Both the position numbers and the translations under genes were made by a program. This document shows, piece after piece, positions 25,039-59,346 of a stretch of DNA of 64,000 nucleotides (positions are counted from its first letter, which is position 1; every line of letters begins with the position of its first letter). The DNA lies in contig NC_043012.1 of assembly GCF_006345805.1 (NCBI RefSeq), forward strand, positions 6,572,001 to 6,636,000, read 5' to 3'. Below the pieces are notes generated by a model that did not search any database, had not been told where the DNA came from, and saw nothing but the letters and a program-made list of their open reading frames with translations. Source of the stretch: Octopus sinensis. Its lineage: Eukaryota.

Positions 25039-25305
25039 AATAGATATTTAACTGTTTGGTAACCGTCTTCTTCCATTTGTGAAACATGGCAGTGCATACA
25101 CAGTCCGTTCCGTGCAAATGTCGAGTGAGAAAGAAAAATAATGCACATGCTTGTTTGCCTGAGCTGTTCACACCACCACATGTGAGTTGTACTCTTGGAG
25201 CTGGTTGGGATCCAATCCAGCTGCATGCTACTGTTAATGTAGTATTTTCTGTTTCTGGTCTATCCGTTTCAAACCCTTCTATTAGGATGTTACCCCGTGG
25301 AATAT
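25039..25305 (-). CDS. Internal coding exon A3 (short Ig-like domain with a fifth Cys)
   Basis: Acceptor ttttgtgtcctatttttttttccAG and donor GTGAGT. 267 nt, phase 1/1: YIPRGNILIEGFETDRPETENTTLTVACSWIGSQPAPRVQLTCGGVNSSGKQACALFFFLTRHLHGTDCVCTAMFHKWKKTVTKQLNIY. Same C28/W30/P35/C43/C69/C71 register as A1 and A2. Membership of the same transcript across the 27-kb gap is inferred. Confidence 0.87.
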
Positions 25306-25689
25306 CTGGAAAAAAAATAGGACACAAAAATGATTTGATAATAATGATCATAATAAAATAATAATAATAATAATAATAATAATAATAATATAATAATAAT
25401 AATAATAATAATAATAATAATAATAATAATAAATAGCCCAGATTCAGTACCAGACAGTGACTCTCATGGCTTCTGATCTTAACTGATTGGAAGTGTTATC
25501 ATGTACATCATTTTGTCTTGGTAACAGCAAATATCCCGCTCAATACGGCAGACATGCTTGTCAGTTGTTTGACCTTAACCAGTTGAGCATGTCCCTTAGT
25601 GGTTGACGATATGTGTTGTTGTTGTTGTTGTTGTTGTTGTTGGTGGTGGTGGTGGTGGTGGTGATGATGATGATGATGATGATGATGAT

Positions 25690-26345
25690 AGGCAATCTAA
25701 AAGAATGCACTGAAGCTGTGGTGTGCAGCACCCATGAGCAGGCTCTCCAAACTAACTCCATTAAGCATCATGTTGACAAAATGAAAGAATCACCATTATG
25801 TAGAATGTGTGGAACAAAAGGAGAAAGGTCAGCTATTTTGCAAGTGAACATGCTAAGTTGGCACAGCAAAAGAACAAATGATGACATGATAATGTTGCCA
25901 GATATATCCACTGGATGACACCTGAGAAATATGGGTTTGCCAGAGCAGCTAAATGGTATGAGCAGAAACCAGAACGGGTGTTAGAGAATGACAAATTTAA
26001 GCCTTTGTTGGACTTCACCATTCCATGTGATGGAATGACTGAGACAAGAAGGCCAGACATTGTTGTTATCAACGAGAAAGAAAGTGGTCCAAATTATTGA
26101 TATCTCTATTCCAGGAGATAGAGTGAAAAATAAAGAACATGAAGGGGTGAAGAAGAATAAGTCACTGAAGGAGGAGGATGGAAGGTTGTGGGGGATGAAG
26201 AAGATTTTAGCGATTCCTGTGGTGATAGGAGCATTGGGATGCTTATTGGACAATTTCAAAGACAGTGTAAATAAAGCTGAGATTAATGCAAAGTCAAACA
26301 AAAACACTTTTTGGTAAAACAAGGATTTTAATGAAAGTCTTGTCT
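25690..26345 (+). pseudogene. Restriction-like-endonuclease LINE (R2 group, R4/NeSL-like) C-terminal fragment
   Basis: Frameshifted pieces: EQALQTNSIKHHVDK..SPLCRMCG (CCHC region), KWYEQKPERVLEND, RRPDIVVI, IIDISIPGD, LWGMKKILAIPVVIGALG. These correspond to the PD-(D/E)xK RLE domain. Confidence 0.8.
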
Positions 26346-28754
26346 AGATAAGACACGGGAGAGGAAGCAGTAAGGGACTTCTGTCAACTTGTTGTTGACT
26401 GCTCCCTAACTAAACTGTCCAGACCATTTAACATCTAAGTATCTGAGATTTTCAAAAATGAAACATAATTATAATCTCCTAATATAATAATGAGTGTAGT
26501 TTTTATATATTTGTACATATATATATATATATACACATGCACATTTGTTCAGAATCACTCTGGATGCAGAGGAGGAGAGAAAATGGTAATTCGGTGAAGG
26601 AGAAGTAGTGAGAGTAATAGCCCTGACTGAGCGGGAGTGAGAGAAAGTAATAGCAATGAGAGAAAGGAAAGGGTGATAGAAGAATAAGGAAGGAAGGGGT
26701 GAAAACAAAATCAGCGTTTCAAATCTGTGTGAGTATATGTGTGTATGTGTGTGCATGTACAAGTGAAGTATGTGAATGTTTGTATGTGTGATTATTATGT
26801 ACCTTGTTTTGTACCTTATTTATATATAAAATACTACAATTAGCCGTCATTATTGACGCCATGGGGCCAGCTATTATTTGACATTTAATAATACAAATGG
26901 ACATTTGACAAATTAGAATGAGTGAGAAACTGGGAACAGCTTTGGGTGCACAAAATGAATGACACTTTTTGTATGATTGTGAAACTCCTTTGCAACTATC
27001 ATACAATTTCAAGATGGGGGACACAAGCAAGCACACACAAATACACACACACACATACACACATCCACATGCTCACACACACACACTCACATACACATAC
27101 ACACACACATACATATACTCACACACATACACACACGTCCACATGCTCATACACACATATACACATACTCACAAATGCATGCACACACGCACACGCCCAC
27201 ATAGTCACACACACATACTTACACACGCATGCACACACACACGTCCACATACACACACATACTCACAAACGCATGCACACACACATGCACACACACACAC
27301 ACCACACACACACACACAAGTAGCTTTTTTGAGCTTCCATATCTCAAATCCACTTGCAAGGCTTTGACTGACCTGGGGCTATAAGAAAAAAAAGCACTTG
27401 CCCAAGGTGCCATAAAGTGAGACTGAACCTAGAACCACATGGTTACAAAGCAAGCTTCTTAACCACACAGCCATCCTGGACTCTGTTTGAAACTTTAACA
27501 GAATCTGAACTCAGACGATGAAGCTTTGAAAATTATTCCCTGCTCATTAGTTATTCTGTCTTCTTTTGAGTTGAATATCTAAAAGGTAAGTCCCATGGTG
27601 ATTAATAACTTTGGTTTGTTGAAGAAATTCCTTTCCCACATGATGGAATGAGTAAATTCGATAGTAAGGTGGGGTGGATTTCATTGATGTATGGAAGAAC
27701 AATATAATTATGAATGTAAAAGTTTGCGTGCATGTATATATCTGTTGCGTGTGTGTGTGTGTATCGACTGATCTCACTGTCTACCCATCTATCTTTCTAC
27801 CTCTCTCTCTCTTATACATACATACATATATACATACATACATACATACATATACATGTGCCTATATACAAACACACATATACATACACAAGCATACATC
27901 AAATTCTCTTGATATCTCGAAGATTCCAAGATATCGCATGATATAATTCATCAAAGTCAGGAATATGACTTTGATCAATGCAACACTGGTGTATATCATT
28001 GTTATGTGCTTCTACTGCTATGATATAATATATACATCTCGTAGTTTCATTGATATATTGCAGAATAAAAACGAAATTGGCACAGAACCAGCATACTATT
28101 GTTACAACATGCTTAGCTGTTTACAGTAAATATGAACCCAGCATATAACCAACTGCTTATCTATCGTATCTTCCGGCATCGAGGACACTGTTTTATTTAT
28201 TTATTAATTTATTAATTTTTTTTCCCCCTCAAAAAATACATATTGGAAATTTACTGTGTCCTACAGGATGAAGGTTATATTGTTCTTCAACCAATTTTAA
28301 CCCCAAAGGAGTATTATCTATGCTAAATTTAATGTTTATCCATACTGCAAAAGCAAAAGATAACATGCAGACTGTATGTGATCAATAAGATCTATATGCC
28401 ATTAAGCTTGCTAAACCATAAATGAAGAATCTTGGTTAAAGTATGTGAACGTTTTGAGATTTTGTCATTATTTTTGTTTCTCTTTTTTTTAAAAAAAAAT
28501 TTCTGAATAAAAATGAGGATGTGTCTTCGATAGAGAAATGTCCTTGATGCTGGAAAATACAGTAAGGATAAAAATTGTGGAAATAAGATGGAGTAGCTGG
28601 AATGCTTTTGATCCTAGGTTGACCTGGGGTTAAACAGTAACCAGAACAAACAACAACATGCTTCACACATACTTCATGGTTGAACGGTTCACTATAGGTG
28701 TGGTGTACCAATGAAAAAAGAAAAAAACACTCAACCATGGCTGTGTGGTAAGTA

Positions 28755-57140: not shown

Positions 57141-57490
57141 CCAAATTATTTTCGTTAATTAAAGAATTAGTAAATAAACTATTACACTAATGAGACAGGT
57201 GTAACAGTTGAACGGTAAACTTTTGGAATAGTCATTACAATCCCATAGAGAAAAGCACCAGCAGAAAAGTTTACTGGTAATGTGCACATAATTGGAAGAC
57301 AAAAATGTAAACTGTTAAATGCTTTGGACAAAGATTTCTTTCACAGAAGGGAAACAATCACCTGATTCTTCACTTTTTCTTTCTCTATGAGGTAGCAATT
57401 GTTATTCTGAGAGTTTGCTGATCAATTATTACACCTGTCTCTAGAGTGTAATAGTTTATTCACTAATCCTTTTGTAAATAAAAAAAATTG
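57141..57490. repeat. Inverted-repeat element (probable old MITE)
   Basis: Arms ~57161-57211 (AAAGAATTAGTAAATAAACTATTACACTAATGAGACAGGTGTAACAGTTGA) and ~57422-57473 are near reverse complements, with weaker similarity outward. Confidence 0.65.
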
Positions 57491-59079
57491 GCTTTCGTTA
57501 ACAGAAAAGTACCAAAATGTTTTATATTCGTTTCATTAAAGAAGAAGAATAAAAAGCAAGATTTTTTTATGCTTCTTTGCCTTTCTCAATGATATTAACA
57601 AGGCAAATGATGTGAATATAACACAATGATTTCTAGGCACTTAACAGTGACTTTCTCGTTCTCATACCAAATTAGGTAGGAAGAAGAATACAAAATCATC
57701 ATTACTGTTAATCTGTAATTCTTATATTTAAACTGTATAGTGTTGTATTAATTCATTTAGTCTAAAACTGTAGCTACATTGTTGTGGTCTTTGGTTAGTC
57801 TGATGGGTCAATGCTCATTGAGCAAACTATGATCAAAAACAGTCCAGTCATGGCCATCTCATCTTATAAGGTGGATCTAGGACTACATTAGTCCTGGGTT
57901 TGATATTAAGCTGCATCCTATATTAGGGCCCTGATTCAAGGTCCAAGGTTTTGAGGTGCATGAAACCATCTCTTAGTTACTATTGTTCCCAGGTCTCTTG
58001 TAATCCTGAGTAGTAGAACCTGTCAGGGTCCCGATGGTAGGTTAAATAACATGTAACCATCCGAGCCAGGGAATGTTGAAATCATGGGATGCAGCAGGGT
58101 GGATGTGAAATTACTGAGTCAATAGCGAATATCACAAGATGCTGAAGGGATGACCAGATAACAAGCTGTCAATGGCTAAGATCTATCAGTTCAGTTAGTG
58201 AACTTCTGCTATTATCAGTAGTCATGGTATGTACAGATGAAATATTTCAGCTAGTAAAGGGCCAATGTAACTAAAACCCAGGCTATACATTCATGAGTAT
58301 CACTCAATCAGAACATCAGTAATAGAAGAGTTGTATTGGTCAGGGAAAATTACCTGACTAGATGGTGAGGACTACATTGTCCACTGAACCCCTTCTTTTT
58401 TAAAATAGTAAGGCATGAGTTGAGGGAGACTTGACTACTGTTTCTACTCTAGACAACCACACCATAGTGGTGAATTCACTTGCCATTGTGGTGTGGTTGC
58501 CTTCGAGATCCTGGATGAGAATGTAACCTTCATTTCCTTAAGGTAATCTTCGCCTGATGACTAGCTGTATTGTGCATAGCTCATTGCATAGATATTACAT
58601 CACAAGCTTCAACCAGCTGAGAAACATATGTAGCATGCATTTTACCTGTTCCACACCCTCAATCTGGATTTTATATATATATATATATACATATAAAAAC
58701 ACACATATAAACACATATTTATACACCCAACCCACACACACATACATATATACCCATGCATGTATATATATATATATATATGTATGTATATATATATATA
58801 TACAAATATATATATATATATATACATATATATATATATACATATATATATATATAATATATATATATATATATATATATTATATACATATATATATATA
58901 TATACATCATCATCATCATCATCATCATCATTTAGCATCCGTTTTGTGATGATGATGATGATGTACATATATATATATACATATATATACATATATATAC
59001 ATATATATATTCATATATATATGTGCTGTTCCATGATGTGGACTAAGGTAAAGAAAATATGCATTATAGGAATACTTAC

Positions 59080-59346
59080 AATAAACTGTCATTGACTGTG
59101 ATGTGTTTTTACTAATTCCTGGATGAAGCCCTTCACAAATACACTGAAAATCATTCAAATCCCGCTTGACATCTATCGCGAGCATGGTTACAGAAACTCC
59201 AATGCTGATTGTCGCACCGCAGGAGAGCCGCACTAGGGCAGACGGAAACCCTCCGGACCAGTTGCATGACACGAGCAGTCGCTCGTTTTCTAACAATGGA
59301 ATCTCTGGATTGAAGCCTTCTATTACAGGCTTACCTGGTGGTGTAG
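59080..59346 (-). CDS. Internal coding exon A1 of a multi-Ig-domain cell-surface protein (short 4-Cys Ig-like domain)
   Basis: Acceptor ttcttttttttctctgcAG (AG at 59348-59347) and donor GTAAGT (59079). 267 nt, phase 1/1, open frame: [89 protein letters not shown]. Aligns without gaps to the exons at 52.5 kb and 25.1 kb. Confidence 0.9.

Follow-up and report, generated by a model that had tools for sequence, protein, structure and literature searches.

The window analyzed here, a stretch of 64,000 nucleotides (nt) of the Octopus sinensis genome (NCBI RefSeq assembly GCF_006345805.1, contig NC_043012.1, positions 6,572,001 to 6,636,000 of the forward strand), very likely contains four consecutive internal coding exons, encoding immunoglobulin-like (Ig) domains Ig1 to Ig4, of a surface receptor gene of the immunoglobulin superfamily (IgSF) that is annotated as 'syg-2'. 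When spliced, these exons (A to D, in order of transcription) give a peptide that is identical at 366 of 366 positions (100%) to residues 164-529 of XP_029646430.2, "synaptogenesis protein syg-2 isoform X2" of Octopus sinensis, a RefSeq protein of 1246 aa whose isoform X1 is XP_029646429.2. The match was reached through a sequence search with a cuttlefish protein of 1214 aa (P0002), in which XP_029646430.2 was recovered as P0087; its 90% cluster also holds XP_029646429.2, XP_052829312.1 from O. bimaculoides and GAB1605182.1 from Argonauta hians, the latter named 'nephrin-like'. The RefSeq model for both isoforms uses the same junctions as exons A-D, with zero difference within the window. An earlier note made from the DNA letters had described the gene as unrecognised, a claim of novelty that does not hold, as the existing NCBI annotation already includes these junctions; what the note described is an ordinary gene, read correctly but not newly discovered. 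Nor has automated annotation missed or fragmented the gene, as that note anticipated, given that the NCBI model contains these junctions and that O. bimaculoides and Argonauta hians have annotated orthologues.

Exon structure and conservation of splicing

IgSF adhesion receptors assembled from phase-1 exons are textbook, and the four exons in the window (Table 1) are all phase 1/1. Together they sum to 1101 nt, or 366 whole codons and two split codons. Each acceptor consists of a pyrimidine-rich tract leading into CAG, and the donors are GTAAGT in three exons and GTGAGT in one. The coordinates, polypyrimidine-AG and GTRAGT signals and phases first read from the sequence are exact: the RefSeq model agrees with them, and randomised windows contain nothing comparable. 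A mechanical scan that required a pyrimidine-rich tract before the acceptor AG, 200-400 nt open in phase 1 and a donor reading GTRAGT returned precisely exons A-D from the minus strand and 0 candidates from the plus strand, and the same scan of 60 Markov-randomised windows returned 0 candidates. A tyrosine codon (T/AT) is formed at 3/3 internal junctions, as had been reported. The V-x-Y-P-P linker that was said to result from it is present at two of these junctions (TVY-Y-PPA and HVT-Y-PPI) and absent from the third, which reads SFN-Y-IPR. The count of ten N-glycosylation sequons (N-x-S/T) in the spliced peptide was likewise reproduced, against 3.9 ± 1.7 expected from composition (p ~0.0014).

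The extent of the gene within the window was set by exact 8-mer and tblastn matching of XP_029646430.2 in all six frames. Only residues 163-251, 253-351, 353-440 and 442-529 were matched, the one-residue gaps being the split Tyr codons, and the window therefore holds four internal exons amounting to ~29% of the coding sequence (366 of 1246 aa). Residues 1-162 were unmatched in the intron stretch 5' of exon A, save for a poly-Cys microsatellite artefact, and residues 530-1246 were unmatched in the stretch 3' of exon D; the gene extends beyond both window ends and is longer than 64 kb. The long intron between exons C and D contains no additional exon of the gene by tblastn with the four exons and matching to XP_029646430.2, and tblastn with all four exons and XP_029646430.2 found no further copies of the Ig exons anywhere in the window. 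An array of alternative exon cassettes of the Dscam type was rejected because the introns within these 64 kb hold no duplicate Ig exons.

Support for splicing across these junctions also comes from cuttlefish. Protein P0002 was the top match of an exhaustive HMMER search with a profile of the domains of exons A, C and D (E = 1e-98; 69 representative proteins found). It is encoded on ~5-kb Logan contigs as a single uninterrupted open reading frame (ORF), resembling an assembled transcript, and its 90% cluster includes a fragment from the cuttlefish Acanthosepion pharaonis (CAE1232368.1). Translation of the cuttlefish mRNA contig L001 gives exactly P0002, and the contig carries TAT at the codons matching the A/B, B/C, C/D and D/E junctions. 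In a cuttlefish genomic ORF (P0003) that runs through exon C, the acceptor (...ag/AT) and donor (T/GTGAGT) stand at the same positions as in octopus. Octopus and cuttlefish proteins are 66% identical overall, with 76, 55, 75 and 69% identity in domains A to D and 82% in the fibronectin type III (FN3) domain, and the Cys, Gly and Pro core positions are conserved among related domains. The O. bimaculoides protein differs from the peptide of the window at 3 of 366 residues, and the same full-length architecture is found in XP_052829312.1, GAB1605182.1 and cuttlefish P0002. Clear orthologues were found only in cephalopods; the best matches outside this group have ~22% identity, and the best named ones are robo1 and hemicentin-like proteins (22% identity, E ~1e-11).

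Protein architecture and the four-cysteine domain

The product is, by its predicted features, a single-pass type I membrane glycoprotein of ~1250 aa. The domain order is a hydrophobic signal segment, a Cys-rich module of ~100 aa, eight Ig-like domains, a 110-aa module (module I, residues 906-1015), an FN3 domain, a transmembrane helix and a tail of ~80 aa. The eight Ig-like domains are A, B, C and D, followed by two of B type and then two of I-set/Ig_3 type, and Pfam matches across the full protein comprise five to Ig_3, four to Ig_2, two to I-set and one to fn3 at residues 1024-1113. Membership in the IgSF is established by an Ig-clan profile passing its threshold: exon B scores 36.3 bits with Ig_3, for which the cutoff is 30 (E = 8e-9). 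The multi-Ig, glycosylated extracellular chain built from one-domain phase-1 exons that the earlier note had described is thus borne out.

Isoforms X1 and X2 differ solely in the cytoplasmic tail. The X1 tail has two YxxPhi motifs (IYEDI and IYASL) and ends in -AMQI; the X2 tail has no Tyr and ends in -EDEL. Cuttlefish also has two tails, in isoforms of 1214 and 1185 aa, that end in -EDEL and -SVWM, such that the -EDEL tail is common to both animals. These alternative tails suggest regulated coupling to different intracellular partners.

At the other end of the protein, the Cys-rich module preceding Ig1 (residues ~65-162) shows 48% conservation between the octopus and cuttlefish proteins. No other part of the protein is as unusual, and the module is encoded by one or more exons outside the window. 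XP_029646430.2 starts with MYECTSVFRVCCCCCCCCCMLSV...; its run of nine Cys looks as if a (TG)n microsatellite had been translated, and the first residue of the protein from cuttlefish transcripts corresponds to Met30 of XP_029646430.2 (MRRIQTLVII vs MRLHQTFVIF). The annotated N-terminus (residues 1-29, outside the window) is probably an over-extended artefact.

Exons A, C and D encode paralogous copies of one domain, hereafter the A-type domain, at 32-38% identity (38% for C vs A over 74 aa and 32% for D vs A). From structure prediction, we are confident that it is a C2-type Ig domain, that is, a two-sheet beta-sandwich with a Cys pair joining strands B and F. The AlphaFold model of exon A, built from an 8-sequence alignment, has seven strands, with a mean predicted local distance difference test score (pLDDT) of 87.8 and a predicted template modelling score (pTM) of 0.76; a run from 3 sequences gave a pLDDT of 52.8 and was not used. 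In Foldseek searches, this model aligned with C2-type Ig domains at TM-scores of 0.6-0.77 and 10-21% identity. The top matches were the membrane-proximal domains of Siglec-10, Siglec-5 and CD33, and others were basigin, titin M10, Dscam Ig7, Necl-4, ICAM-1 and SYG-2 D4. Cys27 and Cys70, the canonical B-F pair, are invariant in 43 relatives. Of the other two cysteines, Cys42 lies two residues past the usual position of the strand-C Trp and Cys68 takes the place of the Tyr in the Y-x-C motif; because strands C and F are neighbors in the sheet, these two would probably form a second, in-sheet C-F disulfide beside the canonical one. The four-Cys signature C...C...CxC recurs in ~50 of 69 related clusters, drawn from bivalves, gastropods and cephalopods, and a two-Cys form of the domain occurs in fish and amphibian models named VSIG10L2 or 'hemicentin-like'.

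A profile of 43 instances of the A-type domain, compared with the sequences of the PDB, had SYG-2, Dscam, FCRL5 and ICAM-1 as its nearest entries. SYG-2 ranked second (4ofy_D, E = 3.6e-22) and 4ofp_A was matched end to end. Among the 43 related domains, 21 match the CD80-like Pfam family C2-set_2 (PF08205), and relatives also match Ig_3; exon D itself has a weak match to C2-set_2 (E = 0.0064). The naming of nephrin and CD80-like C2 domains as the closest general type, made at the outset from the letters, agrees with both results. A homology search with the 43-domain profile found only 5 short anonymous ORFs. The A-type domain, which Pfam does not recognise in XP_029646430.2, is widespread in molluscs and is linked to vertebrate VSIG10L2.

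Family affinities and candidate function

It is possible, though a little short of probable, that the RefSeq name is misleading and that the protein is a cephalopod-restricted receptor, with a Cys-rich cap and four-Cys C2 domains, in an undescribed IgSF family that is expanded in molluscs and has the little-studied VSIG10L and VSIG10L2 as its sole vertebrate relatives. Fish VSIG10L2 (P0001) was the sole significant match of the 366-aa fragment in a word-indexed search (E = 1.7e-7, 26% identity), and two further fish VSIG10L2 clusters (P0017 and P0028) match the A-type profile. These vertebrate proteins share with the octopus protein a domain motif, ...Y-Y-P-P... L-x-C-S-W-x-G-G-x-P, and a layout of Ig array, FN3 and transmembrane segment, but their domains have two Cys whereas those of octopus have four. 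The VSIG10 family name implies an N-terminal V-set domain, a position occupied in the octopus protein by the Cys-rich, non-Ig module; no N-terminal V-set was found in XP_029646430.2, its only V-set match falling at residues 838-891 beneath an Ig_3 domain. Closer to home, tandem A-type proteins with the same C...C...CxC signature as octopus are present in Mytilus, Pecten, Mizuhopecten, Saccostrea, Argopecten, Tegillarca and Physella. Some of these (e.g. P0006) also share the distal-to-proximal order of an A-type array followed by Ig_3/I-set domains, FN3 and a transmembrane segment. They differ in having 2-7 tandem A-type copies instead of the A-B-C-D alternation of octopus, and in keeping the strand-C Trp (W-x-C) where cephalopod domains have L-x-C, at an identity of 20-30%. 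If this grouping is correct, it would represent an adhesion family of ancient bilaterian origin, separate from nephrin and Kirrel, and what novelty remains in the locus is whether the protein belongs to such a distinct mollusc/VSIG10L-type family rather than to nephrin.

The annotation itself raises the alternative of a true cephalopod orthologue of nephrin, SYG-2 and Sticks-and-stones (Sns), whose Ig domains would serve synapse targeting, myoblast fusion or filtration diaphragms by binding a partner of the Kirrel/SYG-1 type. Nephrins are defined by nine Ig domains and one FNIII domain, an unstructured tail with a PDZ motif, Kirrel binding mediated by Ig1 and an invariant architecture (PMC10084454), and CD80-like C2-set (PF08205) domains number 3-5 in vertebrate nephrins and 1-3 in invertebrate ones (PMC8294545). 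The octopus protein approaches this layout with approximately nine Ig domains (the eight Ig-like domains and the 110-aa module), one FN3, a transmembrane segment, an unstructured tail and domains of the C2-set type. The second rank of SYG-2 against the A-type profile and the C2-set_2 matches of about half of the related domains point in the same direction, as does the automated name nephrin-like carried by the Argonauta and bivalve relatives. The tail ends -EDEL and -AMQI are also compatible with PDZ ligands, following loose class III/II patterns that are short enough to arise by chance.

Orthology with nephrin or SYG-2 nevertheless appears unlikely. XP_029646430.2 scores below the Pfam cutoff for C2-set_2 (19.4 bits vs 21), with no single stretch passing, and it differs from nephrin, SYG-2 and Sticks-and-stones by an additional Cys-rich module ahead of Ig1, the domain that binds Kirrel in nephrins. 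Against the 366-aa fragment, SYG-2 has E = 0.014, no better than PVR, nectin-2 or CD276. It is absent from the top 60 PDB matches of the full protein, which are contactins, IgLONs and NCAM brought in by generic I-set domains, and it stands at ranks 30 and 48 in Foldseek, with no special closeness. No nephrin occurs among the named sequence-search matches, of which the best outside cephalopods are the robo1 and hemicentin-like proteins mentioned above. A genuine gastropod nephrin gave BLAST E values of 4e-131 to 0 over its best 100 matches (PMC4074132), and the similarity of the octopus protein to nephrins is far below that among genuine nephrins. The O. bimaculoides reciprocal best hit of human nephrin is XP_014776688.1, of at least 1261 aa and reported without an FN3 domain (PMC8294545); its length fits neither O. 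bimaculoides model of the present gene (1229 and 1115 aa), a comparison of lengths only that is suggestive. The automated names of the relatives are very mixed (nephrin-like, syg-2-like, CD22-like, CEACAM5-like, hemicentin-like and VSIG10L2), and so they reflect best generic matches rather than established orthology. On sequence comparison, the protein is thus nephrin-like in layout and domain type, but probably not a one-to-one orthologue of nephrin or SYG-2; despite the RefSeq name, no clear one-to-one orthology with nephrin or hemicentin emerged, the outcome that the earlier note had named as removing the novelty. The automated 'syg-2' name marks a resemblance at the level of architecture and is no basis for inferring a synaptogenic function in octopus.

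A receptor of cell-cell adhesion or recognition is the most likely function, because the predicted product combines a glycosylated multi-Ig ectodomain, a single transmembrane segment, short alternative tails and conservation across coleoids. In such a receptor, the membrane-distal Cys-rich cap and Ig1-4, the latter encoded in the window, would carry the binding surface, and the alternative tails would couple it to different cytoplasmic partners. In squamous epithelium, desmosomes depend on VSIG10L for their integrity, an adhesion-type role (PMC12960849); as the closest characterised vertebrate relative by domain type, VSIG10L would fit an adhesion role for the octopus protein by analogy. The suggestion of the earlier note, a lineage-specific adhesion or immune-recognition receptor, stays plausible.

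The immune half of that suggestion would make the protein a lineage-specific recognition receptor like those of the Siglec/CD22 kind, from an IgSF group expanded in molluscs and acting in pattern recognition or inhibition, and we regard it as improbable. Tandem arrays of the A-type domain do occur across many bivalve and gastropod proteins, one of which is automatically named CD22-like, and the top Foldseek matches are the Siglec and CD33 domains listed above; these structural matches of immune type are generic C2 domains at 10-21% identity, and XP_029646430.2 has no N-terminal V-set or sialic-acid-binding domain. The two YxxPhi motifs of the X1 tail could be taken as signaling motifs of this kind, yet both depart from the consensus of the immunoreceptor tyrosine-based inhibitory motif, with Phe and Gln at position -2. 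The gene appears as one conserved orthologue in octopods and in cuttlefish (66% identity) and shows no sign of having duplicated rapidly nearby: the window contains no paralogous exons. Nothing found points specifically to immunity. A reading of the exons as open frames arisen by chance, or as pseudo-exons in decay, is effectively refuted. In its favor there is solely the placement of every exon within a longer read-through ORF of the window (as the earlier note had also seen). It was rejected on the emptiness of randomised sequence, the 100% identity with the RefSeq model and the 55-76% identity to an ORF that is intact on cuttlefish transcripts despite a deep divergence, with the Cys/Gly/Pro core kept.

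Several points weigh against our preferred account of a spliced adhesion receptor with four-Cys C2 domains. The collections searched held no octopus transcript assembly spanning the junctions, and the evidence for splicing in octopus therefore consists of the RefSeq model and the cuttlefish transcripts. The Cys-rich N-terminal module, module I and the tail have no Pfam or PDB match, for which reason the roles given to the Cys-rich module, module I and the tails are guesses. The Cys42-Cys68 disulfide is deduced from strand positions in a predicted model. Finally, a literature search for the accessions, for 'syg-2' with octopus and for nephrin with cephalopod or octopus returned no expression, localisation or binding data on this gene, and no paper that mentions the accessions.

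Window features, mobile elements and repeats

Table 1. Exons and introns of the Ig gene and other elements located in the 64,000-nt window (position 1 is the first nucleotide of the window; residues are those of XP_029646430.2).
Feature	Position	Strand	Residues	Description
Exon A, Ig-like domain 1	59346-59080	minus	163 (split)-251	A-type, four-Cys C2-like; 267 nt; acceptor ...ttttttctctgcag, donor gtaagt
Exon B, Ig-like domain 2	56600-56301	minus	252 (split)-351	Pfam Ig_3; 300 nt; acceptor ...ctttttcacag, donor gtaagt
Exon C, Ig-like domain 3	52682-52416	minus	352 (split)-440	A-type; 267 nt; acceptor ...ccttctttgcag, donor gtaagt
Exon D, Ig-like domain 4	25305-25039	minus	441 (split)-529 and first base of Tyr530	A-type, one additional Cys; 267 nt; acceptor ...ttttttttccag, donor gtgagt
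Intron stretch 5' of exon A	59347-64000	minus		Continues past window end; antisense intact LINE ORF inside
Intron A-B	56601-59079	minus		2479 nt
Intron B-C	52683-56300	minus		3618 nt; SINE-like copy inside, 53107-53503
Intron C-D	25306-52415	minus		27110 nt; mariner remnant, LINE fragment, SINE-like repeats, microsatellites
Intron stretch 3' of exon D	1-25038	minus		Continues past window end
Intact LINE ORF	60808-63354	plus		848 aa
Mariner-type transposase remnant	29195-29935	plus		
Retrotransposon fragment with RVT_1	11793-12983	minus		
Retrotransposon fragment without Pfam match	49613-50215	minus		
ORF of 114 aa	23561-23905	minus		
SINE-like copies 1-7	2984-3234, 6655-6847, 7804-8186, 10891-11161, 14407-14620, 21640-21824, 24645-24922			
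SINE-like copies 8-14	33442-33770, 36434-36741, 37316-37497, 38337-38654, 48319-48630, 53107-53503, 63578-63857			

The window is AT-rich (GC ~0.35) and contains many (TA)n and (CA)n microsatellites as well as several transposon ORFs; an Rfam search of it gave 0 matches. One of these is an intact ORF of a long interspersed nuclear element (LINE), antisense to the Ig gene, with matches to endonuclease (Exo_endo_phos) and reverse transcriptase (RVT_1, E = 1e-31) domains and a weak PHD-like finger. Its local GC is 0.47 vs ~0.35 elsewhere, and the element may have been recently active. A mariner-type transposase remnant (Pfam Transposase_1, E = 1e-25) lies inside the 27-kb intron between exons C and D. 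Two retrotransposon fragments are also present, one matching RVT_1 (E = 2.5e-18) and the other sharing a C-terminal motif, 'RLRW.GH..RM', with the 848-aa LINE ORF. The 114-aa ORF contains 'VYRIQCNKCNKFYVGST' and has no Pfam match; as an unconfirmed lead, it resembles the GIY-YIG endonuclease of Penelope-like elements.

A repeat of ~300 bp that resembles a short interspersed nuclear element (SINE) is present in 14 copies on both strands, which are 73-95% identical. Its spurious translation, 'LDALPNANHSVSVVGAFYVPPAQ', recurs across the ORFs of the window, and one copy ends ~120 bp downstream of the exon D donor.

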